Shown: one piece after another, positions 5,684 to 29,576 of the stretch
Numbering within the stretch: the stretch's first letter is position 1
How the letters are laid out: every line of letters starts with the position of its first letter
Virus record (IMG/VR): IMGVR_UViG_3300025012_000027
Location: 62,001-126,000 of that record
Strand: one strand, 5' to 3'
DNA length: 64,000 nt
Program-made: the position numbers and the translations under genes
The notes under the pieces: generated by a model
What the model was told of the DNA's origin: nothing
The model's database searches: none
The model's input: the letters and a program-made list of their open reading frames with translations, nothing else

Positions 5684-6610
5684 ATGAGCAATATAGACGC
5701 TATAAGTCGACTGCTGCCTGATGATCGTGAACTTATATTGGATGAATATGCGGAGTTCACTAGGACCAGAATCCGTAAAGGCGTGAAGAATCGATATTAT
5801 GTATACGCATTAACCCACCCAGACGGAATACCGTTCTACATCGGGAAAGGGTCTGGTAAACGAGCGTGGGATCACTTGTTATCATATAATCGAGCTCCGC
5901 CAAGTTCGACCAAGATGGCGTGTATCCACGATCTAATCGATAACATTAAAGAATATCCGATCATTAGTATATACTCAGATGGGTTATCTGAGACTGACGC
6001 CTTAGCACAAGAAGCGTTTTGGATATCGCATTTTGGCAGACTCGTCAACGATACTGGAATATTGACTAATATTATGCTTGACGGTGCGGTTAGTGATGTG
6101 CCAATCATTTCGGCACAGATGGCCATCGGCGGAGCAAAAGGTGGGCGAACCACTAAAGATAGCCGAGTCGGTATATTTTCACCGACATATGATCGATCTG
6201 CACAGTCTAAGAAGAATTGGGAAATGGGGCTTCTCGATCATATAAATTTTAGAGCGGCTGGGCATAAAGCTGGGACAGCCACTAGAGCTAACGCATCTGG
6301 AATATTCGATCCAGCAAAACAGCACTTGCGGTCTGAATGGAGTAGTAACGCCGCAAACGCATTAACTGCCGCTGGGACACGGAAGGGGTGTTGCACTGTG
6401 GAGTGGTGGTTAGACCCCGTAAATCGACAAGCAGCCGCTGATCGCAAAAAGAAACGAGATGCCGCCGCTGCTGAAACTATTCGGATTAATGGCCCGAAAT
6501 TTATCTGGTCTGATGGTAATGTTAATATACGATCGTATGTATGTCCAGGTGGGTCGTTTGTCAGAGGAACGACCCGCACAGTTAAATCAACAAACCAAAA
6601 AGGAATCTAA
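5684..6610 (+). CDS. Free-standing GIY-YIG homing endonuclease
   Basis: YYVYAL...PFYIGKGSGKRAWDH...ALAQEAFWI...GILTNI; C-terminal GG(K/R)...GIF repeats. Confidence 0.8.
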   Translation: MSNIDAISRLLPDDRELILDEYAEFTRTRIRKGVKNRYYVYALTHPDGIPFYIGKGSGKRAWDHLLSYNRAPPSSTKMACIHDLIDNIKEYPIISIYSDGLSETDALAQEAFWISHFGRLVNDTGILTNIMLDGAVSDVPIISAQMAIGGAKGGRTTKDSRVGIFSPTYDRSAQSKKNWEMGLLDHINFRAAGHKAGTATRANASGIFDPAKQHLRSEWSSNAANALTAAGTRKGCCTVEWWLDPVNRQAAADRKKKRDAAAAETIRINGPKFIWSDGNVNIRSYVCPGGSFVRGTTRTVKSTNQKGI

Positions 6611-6612: not shown

Positions 6613-7680
6613 ATGTCTTCACTTATGTCCCGAATGCTAAAAGCTGGGTCGACTTCAGGGGCCGCGATCTTAACAGAATCTTCGATCTTTAAGACGAAAG
6701 ATCCTGTTATCACACAAATCCCAATCATTAACATCGCGTTTTCTGGGGATGTTAATGGTGGGTTAGTATCGGGGTTAACTATCATAGCAGGTGATTCAAA
6801 AACTTTTAAATCAGCGTTTAGTTTGTATTGTATGAAAGCATATCTTGATAAGTATCCAGAAGCTATATCAATTTTTTATGATACTGAGTTTGGTATTACT
6901 GAATCTTATATCCGGTCGTTTGATATCGATCCTGCTAGAGTCGTCCATATTCCAGTCGAGCACATTGAGATGCTGAAATTTGATATGACCAAGAAATTGG
7001 CTGAATTGAAGAAGGGCGACCGCGTATTCTTTTTTGTGGACTCTATTGGTCAGATCTCAAGTCGTAAAGAAGTAGATGACGCCGTAGATGAAAAATCGGT
7101 CGCTGATATGACTAGGGCGAAGGCTATGCGCTCACTTCTTCGATTGGTCACTATTCAATTGTCGACAAAAGATTTACCATGTATAATGGTAAATCACGTT
7201 TATCGAACCCAAGAACTTTATGCAAAAACCGTAATCCCAGGAGGCACAGCTGTTACATATTCAGCCAATCAAATTTTCGTGCTATCGAAATCTCAAGAAA
7301 AAGGTGCTGATGGCGAATTGGATGGGTGGAACTTCACTATCAATGTCGAGAAATCTAGGTATGTTCGAGAGAAGTCTAAGCTACCGTTGTTAGTGCTGTT
7401 TGATAGTGGTATTCAGAAATATTCTGGATTGCTAGACATCGCGCTGGAATCAAAGAGAGTCATCAAACCATCTAATGGTTGGTACTCTAGAGTCGATGAT
7501 GATGGGGTTGTAGAAGATCGTAAGTGGAGAGCTAAAGACACACACACATCCGAGTTCTGGGATAAGCTGTTAGCGTCGAAATCGTTTAATGAATGGATCG
7601 GAAATCGGTATAAATTAGCAAACACATCTTTCTCGACGTTTGAAGACGAAGAAGATCTTGACACAGAGTCTCAAAGCTAA
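6613..7680 (+). CDS. uvsX: UvsX RecA-like recombinase
   Basis: INIAFSG, AGDSKTFKS, FYDTEFG, DSIG, ADMTRAK, EKSRYVREKSK. Confidence 0.97.
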   Translation: MSSLMSRMLKAGSTSGAAILTESSIFKTKDPVITQIPIINIAFSGDVNGGLVSGLTIIAGDSKTFKSAFSLYCMKAYLDKYPEAISIFYDTEFGITESYIRSFDIDPARVVHIPVEHIEMLKFDMTKKLAELKKGDRVFFFVDSIGQISSRKEVDDAVDEKSVADMTRAKAMRSLLRLVTIQLSTKDLPCIMVNHVYRTQELYAKTVIPGGTAVTYSANQIFVLSKSQEKGADGELDGWNFTINVEKSRYVREKSKLPLLVLFDSGIQKYSGLLDIALESKRVIKPSNGWYSRVDDDGVVEDRKWRAKDTHTSEFWDKLLASKSFNEWIGNRYKLANTSFSTFEDEEDLDTESQS

Positions 7681-7686
7681 TACAAT

Positions 7687-7992
7687 ATGTTTTTCTTCAA
7701 GCGACCCACTAAAACGGTTAGTGACTCTGAGTATGAATTGGTCGAACACCCGCTGGATGACGGCGGGGCTGTACCTGGTGTTCGACTACTCAAAGAACCA
7801 TACGCTGGCGTAATCGTTACAATTTCCCCTAAAGTTTCTGTAAAAGTCGTTGACGAAGAACTACGAGTGTCTTTTGACTATAATGTCGTATTCATGCCGA
7901 CAGGTATGGGTCCGATAGATCACTCAACATTCAAACCTATAATTGGCGACATTGTCGTCGACATAATGCAAAAGGATTACGATGCGACGTGA
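7687..7992 (+). CDS. 40: Head vertex assembly chaperone gp40-like
   Basis: Synteny uvsX-40-41; PYAGVIV, SFDYNVV, IGDIVVDI. Confidence 0.65.
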   Translation: MFFFKRPTKTVSDSEYELVEHPLDDGGAVPGVRLLKEPYAGVIVTISPKVSVKVVDEELRVSFDYNVVFMPTGMGPIDHSTFKPIIGDIVVDIMQKDYDAT

Positions 7993-9388
7993 AGAGCTAA
8001 TTCTGTCAGCGTTGACGCATAACTTTGAATTCACTAAAAAGGCAATCCCGCACATTCAGCCAGACTTTTTCACAGACCCGTCAGAGAAACTAGTATTCAA
8101 GCTGATCGATAGTTTCTATACCAAGTATAGTAAGCTACCGACGAAGGATGTTCTTTCGGTTGAGTTGGAACAGAGTAAGGATATCCCGGAGAGTGTCTTT
8201 GATGAGGTTAAGTCGACACTCAAAAGTGCGTTCACCGATGAGTACGAATATGACCATCAGTGGATGCTAGACGAGACTGAAAAGTTCTGTAAAGAAAAAG
8301 CAGTCTATAATGCGATCATGACATCAGTTAAGATCATCAATGGTGATGACAAGAAGCACACTGAAGGTCAGATACCGTCTCTACTACAAGATGCTCTAAG
8401 TATATCATTCGATCACAATATCGGACACAATTACTTCAATGATGCGCAAGCACGGTTCGAGTTCTACTCGCAGAAAGAATCGAAGATTGCTTGTGGGATT
8501 GATCTGCTCAATACCGTGACTAACGGCGGCGTTAATCGCAAGACGTTGAATATGTTCGTTGCACCGCCAAAAGCGGGTAAGAGTTTAGCGCTATGCTCTA
8601 TTGGGTCTGACTATCTTAAGAGTGGGTACAATGTATTGTACATCACAAATGAGCTAGCTGAGTTTAGAGTCGGTGAGCGGATTGATGCGAACTTGTTGAA
8701 TGTCAATGTTAATGAGGTAAAGGCATTACAGCAAGATGCATTCTTATCAAAGATAACTGCTTTGAAGAAAAAAACTCACGGGCAATTAGTTATCAAAGAG
8801 TATCCAATGAAAACTGCGAGTACACAGCATTTCAGAGTTCTTATAGATGACCTTATCCTCAAAGAATCATTTAAGCCAGACGTCATCATCATTGACTACT
8901 TGGGCATTACAGCGAGTAGCCAATACGGTACTGCTAGCTCAGTAAACTCATATACATATCAGAAAGCTGTGTCAGAGGAAATGCGCGCAATGGCATCGGA
9001 ATATGATGTAGCGCTATGGACTGCGGTACAGACTAACCGAAATGGTATGAACGCATCGGATTTTGATGTAGAAGATATTTCAGATTCTACAGGCCCGATT
9101 ATGTCATGCGACTTGGCTATTGGGTTGATTGCAACTCCGGAGTTGGCAGCTCTAAACCAAATGATATTCAAGCAATTGGCTAGTCGATATGGCGACCCTA
9201 GTTACTATAAGAGATTTGTTGTAGGGGTTGACAAGACTAGAATGCGGTTGTATAATGTGGAACAGAGCGCTCAGTCCCTGTCAACCGAAGTTGGAACGAC
9301 AACTCAAGAATCATCTGACAGGTATAAACCTAAGTCAAAGACCAAGAAGAAAGAAGTTGCTGCTGTAGCATGGGATTTCGATGAATAA
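7982..9388 (+). CDS. 41: Replicative DnaB-like helicase gp41
   Basis: IGHNY, Walker A APPKAGKS, ERIDANL, IKEYP, IIIDYL, TAVQTNR, RYGDP. Confidence 0.97.
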   Translation: MRREELILSALTHNFEFTKKAIPHIQPDFFTDPSEKLVFKLIDSFYTKYSKLPTKDVLSVELEQSKDIPESVFDEVKSTLKSAFTDEYEYDHQWMLDETEKFCKEKAVYNAIMTSVKIINGDDKKHTEGQIPSLLQDALSISFDHNIGHNYFNDAQARFEFYSQKESKIACGIDLLNTVTNGGVNRKTLNMFVAPPKAGKSLALCSIGSDYLKSGYNVLYITNELAEFRVGERIDANLLNVNVNEVKALQQDAFLSKITALKKKTHGQLVIKEYPMKTASTQHFRVLIDDLILKESFKPDVIIIDYLGITASSQYGTASSVNSYTYQKAVSEEMRAMASEYDVALWTAVQTNRNGMNASDFDVEDISDSTGPIMSCDLAIGLIATPELAALNQMIFKQLASRYGDPSYYKRFVVGVDKTRMRLYNVEQSAQSLSTEVGTTTQESSDRYKPKSKTKKKEVAAVAWDFDE

Positions 9389-9692
9389 TGATCAATACAT
9401 TCTCGTAGGTTGCATTGGTAGATCTCAGATCATATCAATGATTCGAGTGTTCGACGCATGTCAACCAGATTTTTGGAGATTTGTTGGTCAGGATGTTCTT
9501 ATTCCTGGATGCTTATCTGATGAATCTATGAATGTTGATATAGTCAAGAATATCCAAAGCATGTTCTGGTACTCGAACCAAGGTACTTGGATAGAAAATA
9601 ATGGCTTGCGGTTAGAATACGATATACGCGGCGACGTGATCTATTCATTGATCATATCGACTATTGATGGAGAGGTGCTCGTGAAATGTTAA
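9381..9692 (+). CDS. Hypothetical protein
   Basis: Overlap-coupled ORF in operon. Confidence 0.5.
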   Translation: MNNDQYILVGCIGRSQIISMIRVFDACQPDFWRFVGQDVLIPGCLSDESMNVDIVKNIQSMFWYSNQGTWIENNGLRLEYDIRGDVIYSLIISTIDGEVLVKC

Positions 9693-10282
9693 CATATCGA
9701 GGATATCTAGAAGAGATGGCAAAGCAATTGCCTAGCCCATTTTCAATGCTTGAGTTTAGGGGTGATTCGTTCAAACGAGTTTCATATGTTAATAGTGCAT
9801 CGTATCCTGTGGTGTCGAGAAGTGGGGACCTAGTAGTCCAATCAATTCACAATCCCAGTACCAATAGCACCTTGTATATAACGAATAACACTAAGCTAGG
9901 ACATACAGTTCATGTGAGTGATATTCATCGGAAATCTCCCACGAAACAACTACCATTTGATCATCTAGAACAAGTGAGCGTGGATCGAGTCAAATCCTCT
10001 GAACATTTGCCTAAAGGCTATGTGACAGATTTCGTGTATAATACATGGGACAAGCAATCATTGCCTTTGAAATCGAGTAATGAACAGCATGTTCAAGGAC
10101 ATGCAATGTGGAAGCGACTATCAACTCGAGCACTCGATGCTGGTAAGCACGTATATGTATCAACTCCAGAAAGCATGACTAAACTGGACGCGTCGACAAT
10201 AGACTCTGGTATATCCGGAGCATTTGGGCCAGATGATCATATGTTATCTAAACACATTATTTTATCACACACTGAACTATGA
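9686..10282 (+). CDS. Hypothetical protein, possible internal head protein
   Basis: N-terminus MLTYRGYLEE resembles T4 capsid-targeting propeptides. Confidence 0.55.
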   Translation: MLTYRGYLEEMAKQLPSPFSMLEFRGDSFKRVSYVNSASYPVVSRSGDLVVQSIHNPSTNSTLYITNNTKLGHTVHVSDIHRKSPTKQLPFDHLEQVSVDRVKSSEHLPKGYVTDFVYNTWDKQSLPLKSSNEQHVQGHAMWKRLSTRALDAGKHVYVSTPESMTKLDASTIDSGISGAFGPDDHMLSKHIILSHTEL

Positions 10283-10563
10283 ACGACATTAGAACCGAAT
10301 ACAATCACTATCACAAACCTTGTCCGTACGATTACGTTGATGTGTACAGGGTGCTAGAACTTTTTAGTGTAACTGACCCATGCCTCCAACACGCGATCAA
10401 GAAGATGTTGGTGGCTGGTGGACGTGGAGCAAAAAACATCGACAAGGATGTAGCTGAAGCCATCGTCACTCTTACTAGATGGCAGCAGATGCGAGCAGAA
10501 GAGAAGCAATCAGTGTTATCGCCTAATGGCGCAGACACTCTTTCATTAACCATTGAACCATGA
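10279..10563 (+). CDS. DUF3310-like phage protein
   Basis: NHY...DVYRVL...HAIKKML.AG.RG.K...D..EA. Confidence 0.6.
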   Translation: MNDIRTEYNHYHKPCPYDYVDVYRVLELFSVTDPCLQHAIKKMLVAGGRGAKNIDKDVAEAIVTLTRWQQMRAEEKQSVLSPNGADTLSLTIEP

Positions 10564-10569
10564 TGTGAT

Positions 10570-11427
10570 ATGAGTAAACTAAAAATATCAGAACTATTCT
10601 ATTCGATTCAAGGAGAAGGACGCTATATGGGGGTTCCTAGCGTATTCTTAAGAACCTTTGGTTGCAATTTCAAGTGTGCTGGATTTGGGATGCCTAAAGG
10701 CGAATTGAGTTCGGACGCCGACGAGGTAGCGCATACTCATACCGCGATTGAAGCGTTTCAAACGTATAACGATTTGCCGTTAGTGAAAACCGGTTGCGAT
10801 TCATTTGCATCTTGGCATCCTGCATTCAAAGATCTTTCCCCTATGCTGACTGTGGATGCTATCGTTGATAGAGCCGTCGATCTACTACCACATAAAGAAT
10901 GGCGAGACGAGCATCTTGTTATCACAGGTGGCGAACCTTTGTTGGGGTGGCAGCGGTCTTACCCAGAACTTCTAGCACATCCTAAAATGCGTTCTTTGAA
11001 GGAACTCACATTCGAGACTAATGGCACTCAGCCGTTGAATGGTTTTTTCAAAACCGTGTTATACAGTTGGACAGAAGCCCGTACATATGACTCACTGACG
11101 TTTTCAGTTAGTCCAAAGTTAAGTTGCTCTGGAGAACCTCGTAGTGTAGCAATCAATCCCGAAGTGGTGGTTGATTATGAATTGTATGGCTACACTTACT
11201 TGAAGTTTGTAGTCGCAACTGAAGATGATATAGCAGAAGCGCTTGAAGTGACTGATATTTATCGAAAAGCTGGGTTCAAAGGCCCTGTTTATTTGATGCC
11301 AGTTGGTGGCGTGGAATCCGTATACACGCTAAATAACAGAACTGTTGCCCAGGCAGCAATCAAACATGGGCTTAGGTATAGCGATAGGCTACAAGTTCCT
11401 TTATTCAAGAATGCCTGGGCAACATGA
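10570..11427 (+). CDS. queE: 7-carboxy-7-deazaguanine synthase (radical SAM)
   Basis: ELFYSIQGEG, FLRTFGCNFKC...CDS, VITGGEPLL, FETNGT, SVSPKL, RYSDRLQ. Confidence 0.95.
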   Translation: MSKLKISELFYSIQGEGRYMGVPSVFLRTFGCNFKCAGFGMPKGELSSDADEVAHTHTAIEAFQTYNDLPLVKTGCDSFASWHPAFKDLSPMLTVDAIVDRAVDLLPHKEWRDEHLVITGGEPLLGWQRSYPELLAHPKMRSLKELTFETNGTQPLNGFFKTVLYSWTEARTYDSLTFSVSPKLSCSGEPRSVAINPEVVVDYELYGYTYLKFVVATEDDIAEALEVTDIYRKAGFKGPVYLMPVGGVESVYTLNNRTVAQAAIKHGLRYSDRLQVPLFKNAWAT

Positions 11428-11618
11428 TGAAAACTCGTGACGAAATTATCACGGACATGTGTTATGCTTGGCGACATGACTATGGCTTGGATAAATGGCC
11501 TGACGAGTTTAGTTTTAGGTCTGGTATGACCCCGGCTGAGAGAACTATCCTTTGGAACCAGATGGCTCGCCTATTTGATGATAATATATCCCCTTTTATG
11601 GAGTTTAATCAAGAATGA
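11424..11618 (+). CDS. Hypothetical protein
   Basis: ATGA-coupled on both sides. Confidence 0.55.
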   Translation: MMKTRDEIITDMCYAWRHDYGLDKWPDEFSFRSGMTPAERTILWNQMARLFDDNISPFMEFNQE

Positions 11619-12115
11619 ATCAACCAGTATCGTATAAGTATACATCAACTAAAGAATACATCGACGCATTCCCATGTGCGTATCGACAATGGCGAGCAGA
11701 CAGTCATTGCAATTCGATCCACGGATACAGTTTTTCCATGAAATTTTACTTTGGGACCAATGATCTCGACGTGCGAAATTGGGCCGCTGATTATGGTGGG
11801 TTGTCAGACCTTAAGAAAATTCTGGAGAGTCAGTTCGATCATACGTTGCTAGTGAGTTCAGATGATCCCGAGTTGGAAACTTACAAACTTCTTCAGGAAA
11901 AGAAGATGGCAAAGCTCACAATTCTACCTAAACTTGGGTGCGAAGCTCTCGCGGATATGCTGTATAAATACGTCAATGGCGTTTACATTCCAGATTTGTG
12001 GGGTCCTGGAGAATCCAACCGACTTTGGTGTCATCGAGTCGATGTGCGAGAAACTCGGAGCAACATGGCATTTCGAGAAGGCCATCGCGAATGGAACGAA
12101 GATCTGTTCGCGTAA
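11615..12115 (+). CDS. queD: 6-carboxy-5,6,7,8-tetrahydropterin synthase
   Basis: HCNSIHGY, DYGGL, FDHTLL, GCE, VRET. Confidence 0.92.
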   Translation: MNQPVSYKYTSTKEYIDAFPCAYRQWRADSHCNSIHGYSFSMKFYFGTNDLDVRNWAADYGGLSDLKKILESQFDHTLLVSSDDPELETYKLLQEKKMAKLTILPKLGCEALADMLYKYVNGVYIPDLWGPGESNRLWCHRVDVRETRSNMAFREGHREWNEDLFA

Positions 12116-12142
12116 ATATACATTCAGACAATAAAGGAACAT

Positions 12143-12457
12143 ATGAATACTAGACTATTAACCCCGCCAGAATACTGTCCGGATGCTCTAGCAACGGACG
12201 TTGGTTGGATCAACCCAAAGAATGGTGAGATCTTAGTGATCGTAAAGGATTTGCGGAATCGTCTCACATTACAGGCAGCCGAACTCGCAAAGGCGTTGGC
12301 GACAATGGAAGCCGTTCCAGAACTTGAGCCAACCACGGTTGATGATGTTGAAGTCGTCAATCAGCCCGAGACCTCATCTAGTGATGCAGTAGAAACCACC
12401 AACAAACCAGGGCGTCGCGGGCGTCCTCGTAAAATGACTTCAAAGGAGACAATTTAA
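12143..12457 (+). CDS. Hypothetical protein with C-terminal AT-hook-like RRGRPRK
   Basis: AAGGA RBS and TAAATA at 12113; GWINPKNGEILV motif. Confidence 0.6.
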   Translation: MNTRLLTPPEYCPDALATDVGWINPKNGEILVIVKDLRNRLTLQAAELAKALATMEAVPELEPTTVDDVEVVNQPETSSSDAVETTNKPGRRGRPRKMTSKETI

Positions 12458-13137
12458 TGAATTATGGTAAGTGTGACCCAGAATTGGGTAAGCGAGTTCG
12501 AGCGTATTTGATGTTGCAGGGGGTCGAGTCTCCAATCGACTATTCTGTGTATGACAGTACGACCGCTGCATCTAAAATTGAGGTGGTAGAACATCACATG
12601 AAAGCTGCTCTTGAAATCATGGGGTTCGACCTCACAAACGACTCTGTTCAAAACACCCCCAAGCGAATCGCGAAGATGTGGGTATCCGAGATCATGAGTG
12701 GCCTCGACTACAACAACTTTCCAAAGATTATGACGTTTGAGAACAAGTTCAAAGCATCTGGGATGGTTGTTGAGCGTGATGTTAAGTCAATGAGCCTGTG
12801 CAGCCATCACCTAGTTACTATTGACGGCGTTGCTACTGTTGCATACATTCCTAAAGAGCGGGTTATTGGTCTTAGTAAGATCAATCGTGTAGTTGACTAT
12901 TTTTCCAGACGCCCTCAAGAAGCCGAGCGTTTGACGTTGCAGATCTTCCATGCTCTTGAGTATTTGTTGGGAACTGAAGATATCGCCGTGTTCTTGACAG
13001 GCACGCACTTCTGCGTTCGTTCACGTGGCGTGCAGGATATCAATTCAAGCACATCAACCGTTAAGTTGGGTGGCGGATTCTTGAACGATCCAATGCTGCG
13101 CAAAGAATTCTACGACGTGGTGCATTCAAAGGCGTAA
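12457..13137 (+). CDS. folE: GTP cyclohydrolase I
   Basis: TPKRIAKM, SLCSHHL, IGLSKINR, RRPQEAERLT, HFCVRSRGV. Confidence 0.97.
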   Translation: MNYGKCDPELGKRVRAYLMLQGVESPIDYSVYDSTTAASKIEVVEHHMKAALEIMGFDLTNDSVQNTPKRIAKMWVSEIMSGLDYNNFPKIMTFENKFKASGMVVERDVKSMSLCSHHLVTIDGVATVAYIPKERVIGLSKINRVVDYFSRRPQEAERLTLQIFHALEYLLGTEDIAVFLTGTHFCVRSRGVQDINSSTSTVKLGGGFLNDPMLRKEFYDVVHSKA

Positions 13138-13149
13138 TTAAGCCACCTT

Positions 13150-13175
13150 GATCGGCAGAAATGCCGATCTTTTTT
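13150..13175 (+). terminator. Rho-independent terminator after folE
   Basis: GATCGGCA-GAAA-TGCCGATC followed by T6. Confidence 0.85.
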
Positions 13176-13186
13176 GACTATTCATA

Positions 13187-14515
13187 ATGAAAACTTTCAA
13201 TAAGCGTATTGGCTTCATCATCTCGGCTCAGCATCTTATTCCTCACGGCGGCATCGGACAATTCGCCAAGGGGTTGATTGAGATGCTAGACGAGTATCAA
13301 ATAGATATCATCCTTGATAAGGCTCCAGCATCATCTGAGTTCGTTGAATTATTGGCCGGTAAAGACAACGTTAAGCTAATATACCCCCCACAGCCGCTTT
13401 CGAGCCAAAAACATACTAAGGTACATGCCTTCAGCGAAACGTTGAATCTAGAGCGGATCATTAACTTTCGCGATAGTTTGATGCTTGCTCTGCAGACGCA
13501 GATCTACGATACTATCATTATCAACACGCCTGAAGCACTATTTTCTACATATGCTCTAGGCATTCAAAAGTTCGTTCAAATCGTATTCTATACGCATAAT
13601 GAGAATCTAGTGTTCAAAGATGCTTCATTCGCGGGGGTGTTCAATGACAGCTATGACGAGATCATAGGACAGAGTATGCGATCTGATGGGATCACCGTGG
13701 GAACTCAGACACCCAGAAACCTCGATGAGTTGGTAGGCATCAAAAGTAAGGCATGGTTACCTATGCCCATCCCTGAAAGGGATCTACTCACTCCAAGCAT
13801 TATCGAAAAATCTGGGGTGCTGTTCATCGGTCGATGGGAAGAACGAAAGAACCCCAAAGAGTTCCTGCGGCTGATTGAAGAAACTGGATTGCCTGCAAAG
13901 GTTATGACGAACGAAAACGGTGCTAAGAGTTTTGAAGCAGCTCTTAGTAAGTTGGGCGTGCCGTATGAGATCAAAGCATCTATCATCGGTAAAGAAAAGG
14001 TAGATTTCATTAAGTCAGCGAAAGTGTTCTATATGCCATCAAAGAGCGAGAGCTATGGGTTTGCTCTGATGGAAGCAATTGGACACACGCATTCAATCGT
14101 TCTCGAAGAATATCCGTGGCATAAGAACTTTGACCCGACGTTTATTAACGTATCGGCCAAGAAAGATGTTGCATCTTTGACAAAACGATTGTATAATACG
14201 CCGGTACATACGGCGAATATTGATTATGTACGATCACTAGACGATCAGTGTAAGTCTATCTGGGTTGACTTCATTGAGTCGTTTAACCCAAAGCAATCAA
14301 CCTCAAATTCGGCTAACATTACCAAACATGATGAAGTGCTATATGCAGACTTCATATCATCGTTGGGTCGGTTTGCTAGTATCGAGGATGTAATTTCTGT
14401 GCTAAGCAATCGGCATAAATTCACAGTGTCACATTCCAAAGAAGGAACCTTTCTCTCAAAGAGTGGAAAGACGATTCAAAAGTCTGAAGGCATTTCATTC
14501 GACGACATATTCTAA
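13187..14515 (+). CDS. GT-B glycosyltransferase (GT4-like)
   Basis: HGGIG, VLFIGRWEERKNP, MPSKSESYGFALMEA (E-x7-E). Confidence 0.88.
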   Translation: MKTFNKRIGFIISAQHLIPHGGIGQFAKGLIEMLDEYQIDIILDKAPASSEFVELLAGKDNVKLIYPPQPLSSQKHTKVHAFSETLNLERIINFRDSLMLALQTQIYDTIIINTPEALFSTYALGIQKFVQIVFYTHNENLVFKDASFAGVFNDSYDEIIGQSMRSDGITVGTQTPRNLDELVGIKSKAWLPMPIPERDLLTPSIIEKSGVLFIGRWEERKNPKEFLRLIEETGLPAKVMTNENGAKSFEAALSKLGVPYEIKASIIGKEKVDFIKSAKVFYMPSKSESYGFALMEAIGHTHSIVLEEYPWHKNFDPTFINVSAKKDVASLTKRLYNTPVHTANIDYVRSLDDQCKSIWVDFIESFNPKQSTSNSANITKHDEVLYADFISSLGRFASIEDVISVLSNRHKFTVSHSKEGTFLSKSGKTIQKSEGISFDDIF

Positions 14516-15763
14516 ATGATAAAAGATATACATTACATCGCGTCCGGAATGTCCTACACGAGAATCAATTCTCCGAGGAACTACGAGAACCCAGAAAATT
14601 TGCAGTTCATTAATGATACTTTCAGAAAGATCAGTGATAGTGCAACCAGACATGACTTCGGCATACTGTTCAACGCATTCACTGAATCTGCTTTTGGCGA
14701 ACGGTTCTCGAAGTATAATGGGCACAAATTTACACACGCCGACTCAGGTGGCTTGCAAGTAATTACTCAAGGTAAGACGATCACGCCGGCATTGAAAGAC
14801 GCCGTATATGCTGTTCAAGCTAAGTGGTCTGATCTGGGGATGTGCTTCGATGAGATTCCAATCGGAATGACTGGAACAACTTCGGGTAGAAATGACGTAA
14901 CGAATCGTTGGTATAAGTCAGACGATCTGGAACACTATGCTAGGCTGACTGGTCGAAACATTGCTAGACAGATTGAAGTTTACCATAAACTAGATTCAAA
15001 GTGTAAGCCAATTCTCATTGCTCAAGGAAACTGTTATGACAGTTACATGCGCTGGGTAGATTATATTATGGATGAGATTCCTGCATCCGACCGTCAATAT
15101 GTCGGCGGTGTTGCTATGGGAGCTGCTGCTCTTGGCACAGGCACCCTCGAAGACATCGAGCGAGCATTTATCTTCTCACAATTGCAGATCGACGTCAAGC
15201 ATCTACACGTGCTGGGAGTTGGTTCTGTAAAACGACTATATCCGTATTTGGTGTTCCAAGATTCGGGTCTGTATAAAGACATCACATTATCATATGACAG
15301 CACTAGCCATACTTCTGGAGGCGAACTTGCAAACTATTACACCGAAGATTTCAAACGTCTTTCGTTTACTCGTCAGTATTCGAGACACTATGAAAAGATT
15401 TTTAATGAGATTGCTGGGTTCATTGACGTTTCTGATTTGACGCCTCGAGACTTTCATGAGATCATGAACAGTGGATACACAAAGTATGTCGAGGAATTGA
15501 ATAAAAAAGACTTTGACTTTTTGCGTTGTCGTTTAGGTATTATTTTCAGAATGATCCATAATTTTATCAACCACGTTGAACACGTTATGGCAAGTAAAGA
15601 GAACATGATTGAAGATGCGATGCAGCATAACCTGCATGGTCAGATTAAGTTCTTGTATGGAGTGAAAGATAAGAATGACTTCGATGCTTGGAACTCGCAT
15701 TTCAAACGTACCGTTAAGTCAAATCGTGTGCAATCTGGACAATCTTTAGAATTGGAGTTTTAA
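14516..15763 (+). CDS. dpdA: DNA 7-deazaguanine transglycosylase (TGT fold, DpdA2-like)
   Basis: ADSGGLQ, CFDEIP, IAQG, HLHVLGVG, SYDSTSH; no C-terminal CxCxxC; clustered with queE/queD/folE. Confidence 0.85.
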   Translation: MIKDIHYIASGMSYTRINSPRNYENPENLQFINDTFRKISDSATRHDFGILFNAFTESAFGERFSKYNGHKFTHADSGGLQVITQGKTITPALKDAVYAVQAKWSDLGMCFDEIPIGMTGTTSGRNDVTNRWYKSDDLEHYARLTGRNIARQIEVYHKLDSKCKPILIAQGNCYDSYMRWVDYIMDEIPASDRQYVGGVAMGAAALGTGTLEDIERAFIFSQLQIDVKHLHVLGVGSVKRLYPYLVFQDSGLYKDITLSYDSTSHTSGGELANYYTEDFKRLSFTRQYSRHYEKIFNEIAGFIDVSDLTPRDFHEIMNSGYTKYVEELNKKDFDFLRCRLGIIFRMIHNFINHVEHVMASKENMIEDAMQHNLHGQIKFLYGVKDKNDFDAWNSHFKRTVKSNRVQSGQSLELEF

Positions 15764-15764
15764 T

Positions 15765-16124
15765 ATGGGAATCAAAACATACATCAAAGTTAGAACTGAG
15801 TTTGAAGGGTTTCATAGCTACCCAGGAGCCGGTAGCATAAGCCCAGCTATCAAATTCCTGGAAGATCGGCATCGCCACATGTTCAAAGTCGAGGTTAAGA
15901 TCTCTGTGACACATGATGACCGAGAGTTAGAGTTTTTCTTGACCAAGTGGGCGCTCGAAGATTTCCTGAATAGAAGAGAACTCAATAACAAGAGTTGCGA
16001 GATGATTGGGCGTGATATCTTGAACGATCATCTGCTGATAGCGTATGGCGGTGATCGATATTATGAAGTCATTGTGTCTGAAGACGGCGAGTCTGATGGT
16101 ATTGTAGAATATACTCCGGAATAA
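15765..16124 (+). CDS. dpdL: QueD-like T-fold protein, DpdL type (proposed CDG decarboxylase)
   Basis: FEGFH, LEDRHRHMF (LxxxHRHxF signature as recalled for DpdL), DRELEF, SCEM, VSEDGE. Confidence 0.7.
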   Translation: MGIKTYIKVRTEFEGFHSYPGAGSISPAIKFLEDRHRHMFKVEVKISVTHDDRELEFFLTKWALEDFLNRRELNNKSCEMIGRDILNDHLLIAYGGDRYYEVIVSEDGESDGIVEYTPE

Positions 16125-16128
16125 TACT

Positions 16129-17220
16129 ATGTCAAAACTTATCATTGTCCCCATTGAACCGATCGAATCTCGGTATACCTCTCAGTGGTATAAGTTCCTG
16201 CCAGGTTTTATTAAAGAAAATACGTCGTTTGATTCAATCGTCCATCTAGAGATTGACAAAGAAGTTCCTGAAAACACTTCTGGTGGGTTCTTTAACTTCA
16301 ATTTCACGTGCGAGTATAAGGCCGCGCAATTCATCTCATTATCTGAGATGGTTAAACGTGGTGAGATACAAGACGGTGATGTGATCTTCTATACAGATTA
16401 CTGGAACCCAACGGTTCATATGACTCGATACATTCTCGATCTAAATGGAATTCGTGCAAAGATCGTTGGATTTGCTCACGCAGGAGACTGGGACCCAGCT
16501 GATATTCTACATCAAAAGCTAGTTAATAAACACTGGTCTTGGACTACTGAGATGTCATTGCATCAGGCATATGATCAGATTTATTTCTCGACGTACTTTG
16601 CTCGACAGTTGTATGCTAATAATCTTGGGGCAGATCTAGTATATGCTGCAGGTGCAGACCTCATCGTAACAGGGTTCCCGATGGAATATTATGATGAAGT
16701 TCTCCCATCATACTGGGATCTTGAATCACCTGTTAATAAAGAAGACTTGATAGTATTCCCTCATCGAATCTCAGATGAGAAAAACTATAAACTATTCAAG
16801 ATACTTGAGCGTAGGTTGCCGCAATACAAATTCGTTGTGGCGATGGAAGTGTGTAAAACGAAAGATGCGTATCACGATCTATTGTACCGAAGCAAAGTAG
16901 CATTCTCGGCTGCATTGCAAGAAACAGGCGGCATAAGTATGGGCATCGAGTCTCTACGAGCAGGCTGTATGACTATAGTTCCTGATCGACTATCATATGC
17001 TGAAATCTTTGACCAGTGGGATTTGAAGTTTGCCGGTGATGTTGCGGATTACGTCGTCACGGAAGATAATGATCCATGTGTCGATATCCTAGTCGATACT
17101 ATAGTGAAGGCATTCGAAACCTGGAACATCGAGGTTATCAAGAAACAACATGATTTGAATTACGCAAAGTATTTCACTGGCACAATTCTTTATGCTGCAT
17201 TGGATACGTTCAATGAATAA
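16129..17220 (+). CDS. GT-B glycosyltransferase, GTDC1/QTMAN-like
   Basis: HAGDWDP, IVFPHRISDEK, KDAYHDLL, SAALQETGGISMGIE, VPDRLSYAEIF. Confidence 0.8.
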   Translation: MSKLIIVPIEPIESRYTSQWYKFLPGFIKENTSFDSIVHLEIDKEVPENTSGGFFNFNFTCEYKAAQFISLSEMVKRGEIQDGDVIFYTDYWNPTVHMTRYILDLNGIRAKIVGFAHAGDWDPADILHQKLVNKHWSWTTEMSLHQAYDQIYFSTYFARQLYANNLGADLVYAAGADLIVTGFPMEYYDEVLPSYWDLESPVNKEDLIVFPHRISDEKNYKLFKILERRLPQYKFVVAMEVCKTKDAYHDLLYRSKVAFSAALQETGGISMGIESLRAGCMTIVPDRLSYAEIFDQWDLKFAGDVADYVVTEDNDPCVDILVDTIVKAFETWNIEVIKKQHDLNYAKYFTGTILYAALDTFNE

Positions 17221-17728
17221 TATAATGCTGGACATTGAAACTTTAGGCACGTCTTCTAATAGCATCATCGTATCTATAGCCGCAGTGGCGTTCAACTTCA
17301 AAGATGATATTACCGAAGATTTGTTGCTAAACTGTTCTCCAAAGAGTAGCAAAGCCCTTGGTATGGTGTCTGATGCTGATACAGTACAATGGTGGGCTGA
17401 GCAACCCGCAGAAGTTCGCAATGCATGGATGGTAGATCAACGACCTATCACAGACGCGCTAACCACATTATCCGAGTTTGCCGGTACTCAATGGAAGAAT
17501 GTTGTTTGGTGGTCTAATGGGATGAACTTCGATTTCCCAGTATTGGAATGGAGTTATAAGGCTGCAACCATTCCAGTTCCATGGAAGTATTGGAATCTGC
17601 GAGATGTTAGAACGGTGTATTCTGTGTTTGATTTAAACTTTCGAGAATTCCCGAGGGTCGGTAAGTATCACAATGCTATTGATGACTGCAAAACTCAAAT
17701 CGCTGCCCTGAAATCCGTACTAATCTAG
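17213..17728 (+). CDS. dexA: DEDDh 3'-5' exonuclease (DexA/Rv2179c-like)
   Basis: MLDIETLG, WSNGMNFD, RDVRT, HNAIDDC; ATG 17213 preferred. Confidence 0.85.
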   Translation: MNNIMLDIETLGTSSNSIIVSIAAVAFNFKDDITEDLLLNCSPKSSKALGMVSDADTVQWWAEQPAEVRNAWMVDQRPITDALTTLSEFAGTQWKNVVWWSNGMNFDFPVLEWSYKAATIPVPWKYWNLRDVRTVYSVFDLNFREFPRVGKYHNAIDDCKTQIAALKSVLI

Positions 17729-19786: not shown

Positions 19787-20956
19787 AAGGATGTAAATGG
19801 CAGATGAATTTAAAGTATTGAGTGACCGCCATGCGCATTACTGTTGAGTGATTTGCAGTTGTCGTAGTGAAATCTTTTAAAATTCCATGTGGTGCCGATT
19901 CGATTACAGTGCGGACATTCAAACCTATTAGGTACCCTCCCTAACACATATCCTGCAGGAACACTAGATGATTGTGGTAATCTTAAGTTGTCGACGCCGT
20001 TATTATACCATCTAGTGCTAGTAACCGCATGCTTATATAGGTGATTGTTCTTCCAGAATTCAGCGGTGGTTATAGTAATCCGTTTATCGGTGGTCAACTC
20101 GATGACTGGTATGCGACCGGAGCATCCCTTATTGCCTTTACCAGTATGGTCATATAAGTCTTTATTAGCCGCATACTCTTCGCTAGTCAGTCTTACTTTT
20201 TCAGTCGTCCCTTTAGTATGAACGGTTAGTTTTCCGGATGGAAGTTTTAGCCCAGAATTCCAAGATGGGGTCCCTTCCGCGAAATGTTTGTATAACCCTC
20301 GATTTGCACGATATTCGGCTACAGTTACCCAGACAGTTTCATCAGTTGCTACTAATTTACACGACAGATGCGCTGGATGAGTAGCACAATGTCGGGTTCG
20401 ACTGTCAGAAATCTTCTTGCGCGTTTCTGGGCTGACATATTTTCCGGTATGCCTTTTCGATACTTGTTTGGCATGTGCTATACACGCCTCGCCGTATAAC
20501 AAAGCCGCGTTTATCATATTGTCGTCGTCAAACTTAGATATGTTTTGGGTCGAACACATCAACAGCAAAGGTGATGCGTTTTGCGCAACTCGCCATGATT
20601 TCCATAATAAGAAATGTGCGACGAGGTGATCTGAGTGTGTTAGAATAACCCGATTCCACGGAAATCTTGCAAAATTTGAATATTGGCCAAATGCCCATCT
20701 AGGAAGTATGTGGTGAGCTGCGGTTTTAAATTTTATGCGTTTTGGCAGACGCGCAGATTCTATGAATGTAAAATATTCAACTAGATCTATCGTAGGATAT
20801 TCTTGACGAAACGCGTCAACATAAGTATAATTACTGAACATTGTTATTTCCTTAGTACCGTTTTAACGTGTTTAGAGTCCTTGGGTGCGTAATACCGCGA
20901 AGGACACTTTTATTTAAAGGGTGTAAATGGCAGATGAATTTAAAGTATTGAGTGAC
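19787..20956. repeat. 40-bp direct repeat (19787-19826 / 20917-20956) of the topoisomerase RBS and first 10 codons, bracketing the HNH gene
   Basis: aagg(a/g)tgtaaATGgcagatgaatttaaagtattgagtgac, 39/40 identical. Confidence 0.95.
19810..20841 (-). CDS. Free-standing HNH homing endonuclease
   Basis: HHILPR...NRVILTHSDHLVAHFLLWK; NUMOD3-like SPETRKKIS; three internal repeats; WYNNG; C-terminal CPHC finger. Confidence 0.85.
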   Translation of the reverse strand: MFSNYTYVDAFRQEYPTIDLVEYFTFIESARLPKRIKFKTAAHHILPRWAFGQYSNFARFPWNRVILTHSDHLVAHFLLWKSWRVAQNASPLLLMCSTQNISKFDDDNMINAALLYGEACIAHAKQVSKRHTGKYVSPETRKKISDSRTRHCATHPAHLSCKLVATDETVWVTVAEYRANRGLYKHFAEGTPSWNSGLKLPSGKLTVHTKGTTEKVRLTSEEYAANKDLYDHTGKGNKGCSGRIPVIELTTDKRITITTAEFWKNNHLYKHAVTSTRWYNNGVDNLRLPQSSSVPAGYVLGRVPNRFECPHCNRIGTTWNFKRFHYDNCKSLNSNAHGGHSIL

Positions 20957-27903: not shown

Positions 27904-28163
27904 CTGAATTTTCAAAAGCACTGCGCAAAGCACGGCCATTGATTGAGTCTGGTGAAGCGCGATTTATGTGTCACGCATTAGGAATTACGGGAGGCGGCAA
28001 TTTCGCCAGTCGGATTTCGAGGCATCTCAAAAAATGCTTAACTTACGAAATTTGGCTTGATAAACACCACCGCGAGGTGTTCCTCAAGATGACCAAAAAC
28101 GACTTCCGTGATGGCCGCCTGCAATGGATCGACCACATGATCAAGATGGAGGAATCGAAATGA
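27900..28163 (+). CDS. Hypothetical protein, GRLQWIDHMI family paralog 1
   Basis: Homologous to 37710 and 37998 ORFs. Confidence 0.7.
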   Translation: MTEFSKALRKARPLIESGEARFMCHALGITGGGNFASRISRHLKKCLTYEIWLDKHHREVFLKMTKNDFRDGRLQWIDHMIKMEESK

Positions 28164-28405
28164 AAAAAGAAGAAGTGCTTGAGATTGCCAGGATGTCTGA
28201 TGCGGGGTTTGGCAGCGACATCGAAAATTGTGACCCTCTATCAGATTGTCTTATTGGGTATGAGGCAATAGCCGCGTTTGCTGGCGAAGTCGAACGTCGA
28301 ACGCTTGAACGTGCTATCACACAGACCATCGGTAAAGGGTTCGTCTCCGAGTATTACTCCTATGATTTTATCGATGCCATCAGAGCATTAAAGGAATCGA
28401 AATGA
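28160..28405 (+). CDS. Hypothetical protein
   Basis: GGAGG RBS, ATGA coupling. Confidence 0.6.
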   Translation: MKKEEVLEIARMSDAGFGSDIENCDPLSDCLIGYEAIAAFAGEVERRTLERAITQTIGKGFVSEYYSYDFIDAIRALKESK

Positions 28406-29575: not shown

Positions 29576-29576
29576 C

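Follow-up and report, generated by a model that had tools for sequence, protein, structure and literature searches.

A T4-like phage carries genes for the replacement of guanine in DNA by a 7-deazaguanine, joined to two genes for predicted sugar transferases, and the same pairing recurs in hundreds of other viral and in some bacterial genomes. These organisms probably make a sugar-bearing guanine analogue in DNA that has not been described, although the presence of the sugar on the base is inferred from gene content, predicted structure and gene linkage alone. No published report of glycosylated 7-deazaguanine in DNA was found.

The gene block and its products

The window analyzed was a stretch of 64,000 nucleotides, positions 62,001 to 126,000 of the IMG/VR record IMGVR_UViG_3300025012_000027, which is a 216-kb contig. 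An earlier note, made from the sequence alone, had listed queE, queD, folE and a terminator, followed by a tightly coupled glycosyltransferase-dpdA-dpdL-glycosyltransferase block with gaps of 0, 1 and 4 nt, and this observation was confirmed. The features were the following.

10570..11427 (+), queE, radical-SAM 7-carboxy-7-deazaguanine (CDG) synthase, 285 aa
11424..11618 (+), small open reading frame of 64 aa between queE and queD, without assigned function
11615..12115 (+), queD, 6-carboxy-tetrahydropterin synthase (T-fold), 166 aa
12143..12457 (+), open reading frame of 104 aa between queD and folE, without assigned function
12457..13137 (+), folE, GTP cyclohydrolase I, 226 aa
13150..13175 (+), intrinsic-terminator-like hairpin plus T6 between folE and GT1
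13187..14515 (+), GT1, predicted GT-B/GT4-like glycosyltransferase with a C-terminal extension of about 80 aa, 442 aa
14516..15763 (+), dpdA, DNA guanine transglycosylase of the DpdA2 family (TGT superfamily), 415 aa
15765..16124 (+), dpdL, QueD-like T-fold protein, proposed CDG decarboxylase, 119 aa
16129..17220 (+), GT2, predicted GT-B/GT4-like glycosyltransferase, 363 aa, the conserved partner of the DpdA2-like enzyme

QueE was assigned by PHROG 2076 (“QueE-like radical SAM,” E 3e-52) and Pfam Radical_SAM (E 3e-6), QueD by Pfam PTPS (E 4e-15) and PHROG 2389 (QueD-like, E 4e-34), and FolE by Pfam GTP_cyclohydroI (E 7e-53, above the curated cut-off) and PHROG 2197 (E 4e-65). The alignment of QueD contained the CxxxHG motif region as HCNSIHGY. 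The two small open reading frames gave no family hit in searches against Pfam, PHROG and NCBIfam; homologues of the 64-aa protein occurred in a few GT1-bearing IMG/VR loci but elsewhere in those loci, and the 104-aa protein was found only in the contig of the window itself. The hairpin, at 13150-13169, has an 8-bp stem with 5 GC pairs and a GAAA loop and is followed by TTTTTT. All three enzymes leading to CDG were thus present, while a tblastn search with phage QueC and QueF found nothing within the 64-kb window, and no scanned large open reading frame matched ArcS or Gat-QueC.

DpdL contains the sequence FLEDRHRHMF, which agrees with the signature motif LxxxHRHxF that replaces CxxxHGH of QueD, and H36, H38 and F40 were invariant across 18 DpdL sequences, including that of phage phiST. 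The protein was assigned to PHROG 17812 (E 2e-20) and was 33% identical to phiST DpdL and 37% identical to ACP17 DpdL over at least 92% of the protein (tblastn). It gave no direct Pfam PTPS hit but could be aligned with QueD over the conserved His/Glu positions. As in related loci, it was encoded together with FolE, QueD, QueE and a DpdA but without QueC.

The transglycosylase was assigned to PHROG 10773 (E 2e-95). Its family profile hit residues 99-271 of Z. mobilis TGT at E 4e-5 with DSGGxQ aligned, and D76, S77, G78, G79, Q81 (in the window protein D76-S-G-G-L-Q81), D112 and D261 were invariant in 21 family members, with D261 being assigned as the nucleophile by position only. Starting a tblastn search either from the window protein or from a KVP40-group protein retrieved the same family of 71 records, which includes the Vibrio phages VH7D, nt-1 and phi-ST2, whose DpdA2 inserts 7-deazaguanines into DNA (PMC10516641), whereas DpdA3 of phiST had no significant match in the window and formed a separate family. 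The enzyme therefore belongs to the DpdA2 family (VH7D/nt-1) and not to the DpdA3 of phiST.

Sequence comparison of the single proteins gave only a sub-threshold Pfam hit for GT1 and none for GT2, but structure prediction and Foldseek showed that both fold as GT-B glycosyltransferases with two Rossmann-like domains. The AlphaFold model of GT1 (pLDDT 91.1) matched GT4 enzymes in the PDB (6eji, sucrose-phosphate synthase, HepE, MshA, BshA, PimA) with E values down to 3e-12. That of GT2 (pLDDT 94.9, pTM 0.92) matched MshA, BshA, GlgM and the DNA glycosyltransferase 9ir0 of phage HY126 (E 5e-9 to 6e-8), and its best viral match was the ACP17 homologue with a TM of 0.86. The Foldseek probability was 1.00 to MshA, BshA, PimA, sucrose-phosphate synthase, HepE and WaaG. 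The donor-binding motifs of the C-terminal domain, the Arg/Lys pair (GRxxxxK) and E-x7-E, were intact: G215-R216-W-E...K221 and E288-x7-E296 were invariant in the GT1 family and R213, E217, K218, E265 and E274 in the GT2 family, with a spacing of x8 in the GT2 sequence of the window. The GT2 profile aligned to the retaining glucosyltransferase AmGGT (8xsg), with these positions in the corresponding region.

Conservation of the linkage

Lack of a conserved linkage between the glycosyltransferases and dpdA had been named beforehand as a finding that would speak against glycosylation, and the outcome was strongly positive for linkage. GT2 has at least 576 relatives in IMG/VR. In 53 of the 57 GT2-selected loci with at least 3 kb on each side, DpdL was located within 1.5 kb. 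In the DpdL-selected loci with flanks of at least 4 kb, GT2 and the DpdA2-like gene were present together in 40 and absent together in 8 cases, GT2 was present with no DpdA2-like gene inside the fetched flank in 2 cases, and the DpdA2-like gene without GT2 in none. All GT2-less loci carried instead the small phiST-type DpdA3, for which plain dDG is the known product. This indicates that GT2 tracks the DpdA2-like enzyme rather than DpdL itself, which corrects the earlier reading, and bacterial GT2-DpdA operons can indeed lack DpdL.

Five different orders of DpdA, DpdL and GT2 keep the three genes together, with the cultured phages ACP17, X1, PA5oct, Phosso, BCSR5 and BUCT-ZZ01 as examples, and the same four-gene block after folE is present in Synechococcus phage BUCT-ZZ01. 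The arrangement is not chance, and GT2 is a near-obligate neighbour of this kind of DpdA and of DpdL in hundreds of viral contigs. Evaluation of these numbers needs to consider that many IMG/VR loci belong to a few related lineages syntenic with PA5oct, so that the number of independent observations is far smaller than the number of loci: 16 GT2 clusters at 50% identity, 13 of them with adjacent DpdL.

GT1 recurs in a large subclade. It has 430 relatives in IMG/VR, nearly all directly after queE of a DpdA-DpdL-GT2-FolE-QueD-QueE cluster; of the GT1-selected loci, 34 of 37 with at least 9 kb upstream also held GT2, and 59 of 61 had QueE. GT1, GT2 and DpdA also recur together in Roseobacter chromosomes without folE, queE or dpdL (GT1 HMM E 1e-90 to 1e-97), in operons that contain little else than a YhhQ-like transporter, GT2, DpdA, one unknown protein and GT1. 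Clusters of relatives contain in addition an NDP-sugar epimerase/dehydratase (PF01370, in 86 of 177 GT2-positive loci) and a small nucleotidyltransferase (PF01467, in 75), which may be related to sugar supply. The window itself contains no NDP-sugar genes, phosphoribosyltransferase or f15 homologue in its 64 kb, and the phage would have to use sugar nucleotides of the host.

Alternatively, the glycosyltransferases may belong to a different process, acting on a modified pyrimidine (hmC, 5hoC or hmU, as in T-even phages and RB69), a phage or host protein, or host glycans, with the clustering only reflecting a shared block of early or DNA-metabolism genes. GT-B enzymes glycosylating modified cytosine in DNA exist in T4-like phages, the structural hits of GT2 include 9ir0 of HY126, the DNA of which carries arabinosylated 5-hydroxycytosine (PMC13326640), only 64 kb of a 216-kb genome is visible so that a pyrimidine hydroxymethylase or hydroxylase could be located elsewhere, and two contigs of 462-465 kb carry GT1 without deazaguanine genes within 10 kb. 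On the other hand, the linkage survives five gene orders and very different phage lineages and also holds in the bacterial operons, DpdL modules with the other transglycosylase type never have the glycosyltransferase, no thymidylate-synthase-like gene was seen among the window open reading frames scanned, and 9ir0 is no closer to GT2 than MshA or BshA are. This possibility is considered unlikely.

Proposed pathway and alternatives

The block is best explained as a seven-gene DNA-hypermodification module. FolE, QueD and QueE should produce the free base CDG from GTP, as follows from family membership. With no QueC, the pathway would stop at CDG, which may be processed by the QueD paralogue DpdL; the published proposal is decarboxylation to 7-deazaguanine, which is inferred and has never been shown biochemically, even for phiST (PMC10516641). 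The DpdA2-family transglycosylase would exchange guanine in the phage DNA for the deazaguanine base, as inferred from the tested relatives of VH7D and nt-1, which do so in E. coli (PMC10516641). GT2, a retaining-type GT4-like enzyme with intact NDP-sugar motifs, would be an integral part of the pathway and most likely puts a sugar on the deazaguanine, while GT1 would add a second sugar or serve a second site. The virion DNA would then carry a glycosylated 7-deazaguanine in place of some or all G, shielding it from restriction enzymes.

The gene identities, the predicted folds, the conserved motifs and the conserved linkage were established by the analysis, whereas the activities of DpdL, of this DpdA and of both glycosyltransferases, the final position of the sugar on the base, the nature of the sugar and its donor, the acceptor atom and the order of the steps are inferences. 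The interpretation of the earlier note, one or two sugars added to the inserted base as a guanine-side analogue of T-even glucosyl-hmC, was thus partly supported, and the model as a whole is regarded as only somewhat more likely than not. GT2 may act on DNA after insertion, as in the T-even analogy, or on the free base before it. The evidence leans slightly toward the free base because GT2 co-varies with the type of transglycosylase, is strongly acidic (pI 4.8, net charge about −20), which is unusual for a DNA-binding enzyme, and resembles glycosyltransferases with small-molecule acceptors; the DpdA family, however, is also acidic.

Expression of dpdA plus dpdL of ACP17 in E. coli gave no dDG, and the authors wrote that other enzymes may be needed (PMC10516641); the ACP17 GT2 gene is located between these two genes. 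Phage PA5oct, which possesses the module, has restriction-resistant DNA consistent with a modified G and is also targeted by nucleases that sense hypermodified DNA (PMC12191111). No measured chemistry exists, however, for any phage with this architecture. Moreover, 7-deazaguanine has no obvious O- or N-handle at C7 while GT4 enzymes are typically O-glycosyltransferases, which leaves the acceptor atom unexplained, and the absence of DpdL from the bacterial GT2-DpdA operons means that the acceptor cannot be specific to the DpdL product.

A second, less likely possibility is that GT2 is needed to make or insert the deazaguanine but the sugar is not kept in the final DNA. The CDG carboxylate may be transiently activated as a glycosyl ester that is then processed by DpdL or DpdA, or a GT-fold protein may serve as an obligatory, perhaps non-catalytic, partner of the DpdA2-like enzyme, much as bacterial DpdA needs DpdB, and the end product would be plain dDG or dCDG. 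The strict co-variation of GT2 with the DpdA2-like gene, which it often overlaps, the missing handle for a stable O-glycoside and the ACP17 result are in agreement with this, and complete substitution of G by 7-deazaguanine was reported for a Vibrio phage of unexamined gene content, VP1 (bioRxiv 10.1101/2025.10.29.685425). A purely structural role is argued against by the invariant donor-binding and catalytic motifs across the family, a second glycosyltransferase and NDP-sugar tailoring genes are hard to explain if the sugar is only a transient handle, and the tested DpdA2 enzymes of VH7D and nt-1 work alone in E. coli.

Very unlikely is a third possibility, that the module makes a glycosylated deazapurine small molecule, such as a nucleoside-like metabolite or cofactor. 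The nearest structural neighbours of GT2 have small-molecule acceptors, a phosphoribosyltransferase and a nucleotidyltransferase are common in related clusters, and deazapurine nucleoside antibiotics such as toyocamycin and tubercidin are made from CDG. However, apart from the two loci mentioned above, a DNA or tRNA transglycosylase homologue was always present with GT2, DpdA2 relatives act on DNA, PA5oct DNA behaves as G-modified, and the phosphoribosyltransferase can be explained as salvage of the guanine released by base exchange.

Comparison with related systems

In the T-even phages with glucosyl-hmC (alpha- and beta-glucosyltransferases) and in RB69, DLP3 and HY126 with arabinosyl-5hoC (PMC13326640), the logic is the same as that proposed here: a base-level change gives an unusual base, which is then decorated by GT-B enzymes using NDP-sugars, sometimes by two or more transferases, with an anti-restriction role. 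Those systems act on pyrimidines through a hydroxyl handle made at the nucleotide level, while the base would here be a purine analogue installed by base exchange. GT2 and GT1 are GT4-like and not close relatives of the T4 enzymes, neither of which appeared among the 50 best Foldseek matches in the PDB or BFVD searches, so that the resemblance is one of function and not of family membership.

The only known case of a sugar on a 7-deazaguanine derivative in a nucleic acid is mannosyl- and galactosyl-queuosine in animal tRNA (QTMAN/GTDC1, QTGAL; PMC12518689, bioRxiv 10.64898/2026.06.28.735034), in which the base is also installed by a TGT-family enzyme and then glycosylated. This is RNA and not DNA, and the sugar is added to the cyclopentenediol hydroxyls of queuosine, which the pathway in the window cannot make. 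QTMAN is a GT4 enzyme.

In the bacterial Dpd system (DpdA/DpdB/DpdC, dPreQ0 and dADG in Salmonella Montevideo DNA), a TGT-family enzyme likewise puts a 7-deazaguanine into DNA, and the bacterial GT2-DpdA operons identified here also sit among defence genes. DpdB and DpdC are not present here, and neither the DpdA of the window nor the bacterial GT2-linked DpdA gave a hit to any PADLOC model.

The dDG module of Cellulophaga phage phiST (Cui et al. 2023, PMC10516641) shares the CDG-forming genes, the absence of QueC and a DpdL with the LxxxHRHxF motif, and its transglycosylase inserts the base after replication. It has, however, a DpdA3 of about 260 aa and no glycosyltransferase, and its product was measured as plain dDG, while the window has the 415-aa DpdA2-family enzyme plus GT2 and GT1. 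In the DpdL-selected loci, the two architectures were mutually exclusive.

The DpdA2 systems of the Vibrio Schizotequatroviruses (VH7D, nt-1, KVP40 group) and Menderaviruses possess a homologous transglycosylase (about 32-33% identity over 83-97% of the protein) in the same genomic neighbourhood next to folE in T4-like phages. Those phages carry QueC, with or without QueF or ArcS, make dPreQ0, dPreQ1 or dG+ at low levels, and have neither DpdL nor GT2. The loop equivalent to the TGT substrate pocket also differs, being GAAALGTG in the group of the window and xxCIGN in the QueC group.

Gene content of the cluster and identity of its products

The window derives from a T4-like phage and encodes a UvsX-like recombinase, a gp41-type helicase, both topoisomerase II subunits, RNA ligases, baseplate and tail genes, and NAD-salvage genes. 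It corresponds to about 62-126 kb of the IMG/VR contig IMGVR_UViG_3300025012_000027 with 216,115 bp, and all statements on the content of this genome refer to these 64 kb only. A megablast search with the 6.6-kb cluster against 50,697 phage records yielded no match. The phage has no close cultured relative. The nearest one is the freshwater Synechococcus phage BUCT-ZZ01, at 48-63% protein identity; for the four proteins of the block starting with GT1, identities of 23-63% to those of the window were obtained. The arrangement of open reading frames (ORFs) described in the earlier note was confirmed:

10570-11427, + strand: QueE (PHROG QueE-like, E 3e-52)
between queE and queD, + strand: a 64-aa ORF
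11615-12115, + strand: QueD (Pfam PTPS, E 4e-15)
between queD and folE, + strand: a 104-aa ORF
12457-13137, + strand: FolE (Pfam GTP cyclohydrolase I, E 7e-53)
13150-13175, + strand: hairpin with an 8-bp stem followed by T6
13187-14515, + strand: GT1
14516-15763, + strand: DpdA
15765-16124, + strand: DpdL
16129-17220, + strand: GT2

The last four genes are tightly packed with gaps of 0, 1, and 4 nt. Searches with phage QueC and QueF proteins by tblastn found nothing in the window. A gene for a 3'-5' exonuclease (Rv2179c-like, E 7e-38) at 17192-17728 on the + strand overlaps the end of GT2 by 29 nt and also follows GT2 in BUCT-ZZ01, but it was present in only 13 of the first 170 loci and is probably not part of the module.

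DpdL contains FLEDRHRHMF, which agrees with the LxxxHRHxF signature used to separate DpdL from QueD (Cui et al. 2023, PMC10516641). It is 33% identical to DpdL of phiST and 37% identical to that of ACP17, and H17, H36, H38, E56, C78, E79, and E106 are invariant in 18 DpdL sequences. In Vibrio phage Bakedbeans (gp176, locus L171:8221-9372) and Chryseobacterium phage MA9V-3 (locus L175:8461-9342), DpdL is the C-terminal part of a longer protein of 383 and 293 aa, respectively, with an N-terminal part that has no Pfam hit.

The 415-aa DpdA has no Pfam hit on its own, but a profile of 21 family members matched the Zymomonas tRNA-guanine transglycosylase (TGT) with E 4e-5 and with the DSGGxQ motif aligned. 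D76, S77, G78, G79, Q81, D112, and D261 are invariant. An assignment to DpdA3 was considered and rejected because the tblastn family of the protein includes Vibrio phages VH7D, nt-1, and phi-ST2, while the small DpdA3 of phiST forms a separate family. Cui et al. named the enzymes of the Vibrio phages DpdA2 and showed that these insert preQ1, preQ0, and, weakly, CDG into DNA. The loop equivalent to the TGT substrate pocket (GGLAVGE in Z. mobilis), within residues 192-212 of the DpdA of the window (window 15089-15151), reads GGVAMGAAALGTG in the T4-like, GT-linked DpdA2 proteins. A comparison with loci L004 (Stenotrophomonas phage Marzo), L005, and L006 showed xxCIGN in the QueC-linked DpdA2 proteins. 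This is a possible specificity determinant.

The sequences of GT1 and GT2 alone gave little information. GT1 produced a sub-threshold Glycos_transf_1 hit and GT2 none, PDB searches with the single sequences yielded nothing for either protein, NCBIfam gave only very weak GT4 hits for GT1, and a GT1 profile found nothing among PDB sequences at E 1e-4. Structure prediction was needed. With alignments of 46-47 metagenomic homologues, both proteins were predicted with high confidence (pLDDT 91.1 for GT1 and 94.9 for GT2) to fold as GT-B enzymes, whose best PDB matches are the GT4 family members MshA, BshA, PimA, GlgM, sucrose-phosphate synthase, HepE, and WaaG. The hits of GT2 also include the glycosyltransferase 9ir0 of phage HY126, the DNA of which carries arabinosylated 5-hydroxycytosine (PMC13326640). 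The donor-side motifs are invariant in both families: G215-R216...K221 and E288-x7-E296 in GT1, and R213, E217, K218, E265, and E274 in GT2, the latter aligning to the matching region of the retaining glucosyltransferase AmGGT. Neither protein is a relative of the T4 alpha- or beta-glucosyltransferase at the level of the 50 best structural hits.

Conservation of the linkage

A lack of conservation of the linkage between the glycosyltransferase genes and dpdA had been named in the earlier note as one of the results that would refute its proposal, but the linkage was found in cultured phages, uncultured viruses, and bacteria. In cultured phages, a GT2 homologue is located beside DpdL and/or the DpdA2-like gene:

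Synechococcus phage BUCT-ZZ01: same order as in the window
Acidovorax phage ACP17: DpdA-GT2-DpdL-QueE
Xanthomonas phages X1 and BUDD: GT2-DpdA-DpdL-QueE
Pseudomonas jumbo phages of the PA5oct group: DpdA-GT2-DpdL...QueE
Sinorhizobium phage Phosso: DpdL-GT2...FolE...QueE
Burkholderia phage BCSR5: GT2 homologue beside DpdL and/or the DpdA2-like gene

Uncultured viruses were selected on one gene at a time. A GT2 profile found at least 576 relatives in IMG/VR. Of 57 fetched loci with at least 3 kb on both sides, 53 have DpdL within 1.5 kb, 3 have it farther away, and 1 has none. A DpdL profile found at least 597 relatives. Of 50 fetched loci with flanks of at least 4 kb, 40 have both GT2 and the DpdA2-like gene, 8 have neither, 2 have GT2 only, and none has the DpdA2-like gene without GT2. 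Every locus lacking GT2 carries a phiST-type small DpdA3 directly after DpdL, as do the cultured phages phiST, D479, Ahp1, RHph_I1_18, Bakedbeans, and MA9V-3. The triad of DpdA, DpdL, and GT2 occurs in five different orders, and the GT2 sequences fall into 16 clusters at 50% identity, 13 of them with adjacent DpdL. Evaluation of these numbers needs to consider that they come from the best-scoring 80 loci of each scan without phylogenetic correction, and that many loci belong to lineages syntenic with PA5oct. The number of independent events is consequently much smaller than the number of loci, but it is clearly more than a few. One IMG/VR contig (L020) has two GT2 copies, at 10001-11032 and 13962-14966, flanking the DNA polymerase gene, with DpdL directly before the second copy.

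The GT1 family has 430 relatives in IMG/VR and more than 1,700 in the large protein collection. The usual order in GT1-selected loci is DpdA-DpdL-GT2-FolE-QueD-QueE-GT1, with QueE present in 59 of 61 evaluable loci and GT2 in 34 of 37 loci with at least 9 kb upstream. Two contigs of 462-465 kb have GT1 alone, and most GT2-selected marine loci have no GT1 within 10 kb. GT1 is therefore an accessory of a large subclade, while GT2 is core.

GT2 homologues also occur in 42 bacterial or archaeal genome contigs, again next to a DpdA2-like gene. In Magnetospirillum the order is GT2-DpdL-DpdA-QueD. Roseobacter-group isolates (Sulfitobacter, Shimia, and others) contain a YhhQ/Vut_1-like transporter, GT2, DpdA, an unknown protein of about 585 aa, and a true GT1-family gene on the other strand (HMM E 1e-90 to 1e-97), with no FolE, QueE, or DpdL nearby. 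This conserved operon was seen at positions 7360-13507 of the Sulfitobacter chromosomal locus L267; the other bacterial loci with such operons, of this or the Magnetospirillum type, are L264, L277, L281, L286, L269, and L273. Neighboring genes resemble a defense island (nSTAND3/PDC-S73, an AbiEii-like ATPase, HEPN). PADLOC models gave no hit for DpdA, GT1, GT2, or their bacterial counterparts. The operons may represent a cellular DNA-modification system that is not in PADLOC. The minimal conserved unit is thus GT2 plus the DpdA2-like enzyme, and the pair of GTs with DpdA recurs independently of the phage CDG genes.

Alternatively, the GTs may serve another target, such as a modified pyrimidine or a protein. 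This is contradicted by the linkage through five gene orders, by the exclusivity with the DpdA type, and by the compact bacterial operons, and no thymidylate-synthase-like gene, which would provide the handle for pyrimidine glycosylation, was found among the larger ORFs of the window. About 150 kb of the contig is unseen, however, and the alternative is not excluded for GT1 in the two jumbo contigs. It is considered unlikely.

Clustering of all ORFs of the fetched loci revealed further frequent members of the phage clusters: an NAD-dependent sugar epimerase/dehydratase (PF01370; 86 of 177 GT2-positive loci), a small nucleotidyltransferase (PF01467; 75 loci), a phosphoribosyltransferase (PF00156; 83 loci), and an unknown 170-aa protein, f15 (89 loci). 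The first two are the classic makers and tailors of NDP-sugars, which fits real glycosyl transfer. HMMs of these and other accessory genes found nothing in the 64-kb window. The phosphoribosyltransferase, located at L001:4748-5209 in BUCT-ZZ01, where it is annotated as xanthine-guanine PRTase, and at L007:10333-10767 in PA5oct, may recycle the guanine released by base exchange back to GMP and so to GTP for FolE. A nucleotide-level route was considered as another meaning of this gene, but salvage was judged to be the simpler reading, both being inferences.

Inferred mechanism and comparison with known systems

From established family knowledge, FolE, QueD, and QueE convert GTP to CDG, and the absence of QueC stops the pathway before preQ0. 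DpdL would then act on CDG or a precursor, and the published proposal, which has never been demonstrated, is decarboxylation to 7-deazaguanine (PMC10516641). The DpdA2-like enzyme would exchange guanine in DNA for the base. The new element in this view is that a GT4-like enzyme with intact catalytic motifs is an obligate partner of this transglycosylase, often with a second GT and with sugar-nucleotide genes. The simplest reading is that the deazaguanine carries one or two sugars in the final DNA. Gene and family identities and the conserved linkage rest on the sequence data and, for the folds of the two GTs, on structure prediction, whereas all functional statements beyond family membership, including decarboxylation, base exchange, and sugar transfer, are inferred from gene context and predicted structure. 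The interpretation in the earlier note, a deazaguanine decorated with one or two sugars, is supported in part.

Two published observations fit this reading. Expression of ACP17 dpdA plus dpdL gave no dDG in E. coli, and the authors suspected missing enzymes (PMC10516641); the GT2 gene of ACP17 is located between those two genes, which would give a concrete and testable reason for this negative result. PA5oct, which has the module, has restriction-resistant DNA consistent with a modified G and is also attacked by END nucleases that sense hypermodified DNA, the chemistry in PA5oct being undetermined in that study (PMC12191111). The omics paper on PA5oct says nothing about DNA modification.

Concerning the order of steps, GT2 co-varies with the type of transglycosylase rather than with DpdL, is strongly acidic (pI 4.8, net charge about -20), and has structural neighbors that mostly use small acceptors. 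In the T4-like members of the GT-linked group, moreover, the loop equivalent to the TGT substrate pocket reads GAAALGTG, against xxCIGN in QueC-linked DpdA2. Together, these features lean towards glycosylation of the free base followed by insertion of the bulkier base, but none of them is decisive, and global charge was uninformative as a test for DNA binding because the DpdA family is acidic, too. 7-Deazaguanine has no hydroxyl. The candidate acceptors for a sugar, by pure inference, are the CDG carboxylate (ester), N2, or the nucleophilic C7 (C-glycoside), or DpdL may perform different chemistry. An annotated inositol-1-phosphate synthase gene inside the FolE-QueC-DpdA2-QueE cluster of Menderaviruses (L004:3502-4752 in phage Marzo) hints at yet another, cyclitol-based decoration of deazaguanine; MshA, the closest structural relative of GT2, uses inositol-1-phosphate as acceptor.

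GT2 may instead be required while the sugar is only transient, or may act only as a partner protein, which would leave plain dDG or dCDG in the DNA. The invariant catalytic motifs, the second GT, and the NDP-sugar genes argue against this possibility, which remains doubtful. A glycosylated deazapurine metabolite rather than a DNA base as the product is very unlikely because a DNA transglycosylase homologue is always present.

The system belongs to the phage 7-deazaguanine DNA-modification systems. It shares DpdL with the phiST dDG module and the transglycosylase family with the Vibrio DpdA2 systems, and it differs from both by the obligatory GT2 and, in this clade, by GT1. It would work like the two-step scheme of the T-even phages or RB69, an unusual base followed by glycosylation, but it is not related to those transferases and would act on the purine side. 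The only known sugar on a 7-deazaguanine in a nucleic acid is that of mannosyl- or galactosyl-queuosine in animal tRNA. Full-text searches of an incomplete literature collection, in which DpdL appeared in only one work, found no report of glycosylated 7-deazaguanine in DNA and none linking a glycosyltransferase to DpdL or DpdA.

It is about as likely as not that GT2 plus the DpdA2-like transglycosylase, often joined by GT1, forms a widespread two- or three-enzyme unit that installs a glycosylated 7-deazaguanine in DNA. The unit is found in at least about 500 viral contigs from marine and freshwater samples, in Pseudomonas jumbo phages of the PA5oct group, in ACP17, X1, and BUCT-ZZ01, and, with a YhhQ-like precursor transporter, in chromosomal defense-island-like loci of Alphaproteobacteria. 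All known sugar-decorated DNA bases are pyrimidines (glucosyl-hmC, arabinosyl-hmC/5hoC, base J, SP15-type uracils), so that the product would be the first sugar-bearing purine analogue in any DNA. It would also give a chemical identity to the unknown modified G of PA5oct-like jumbo phages, which are of interest for phage therapy. Since the module is abundant in environmental viromes, the modification would affect restriction digests and sequencing-library preparation, nanopore basecalling, and the reading of phage-defense specificity (type IV restriction enzymes, DNA glycosylases). GT1 and GT2 are two new predicted enzyme families with a defined genomic signature.

Other features of the window

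Two homing-endonuclease-like ORFs are inserted among the replication genes, one at 5684-6610 on the + strand (PHROG 314/5356) between RNA ligase and UvsX, and the other at 19810-20841 on the - strand (PHROG 655/12434) just before topoisomerase II. Two local G+C peaks of 0.53 and 0.515, against about 0.42 elsewhere, were found at 45809-47932 and 28000-30000, the first coinciding with a 707-aa ORF on the - strand without PHROG or Pfam hit. Two adjacent proteins of about 197 aa, encoded at 48772-49958 on the + strand, are made of leucine-rich-repeat-variant and HEAT repeats (Pfam LRV, E 2e-28 and 3e-25), which is unusual for a phage. An NAD-salvage pair typical of KVP40-like phages, an NMN-adenylyltransferase/Nudix fusion and a nicotinamide phosphoribosyltransferase, is located at 54914-57425 on the + strand.
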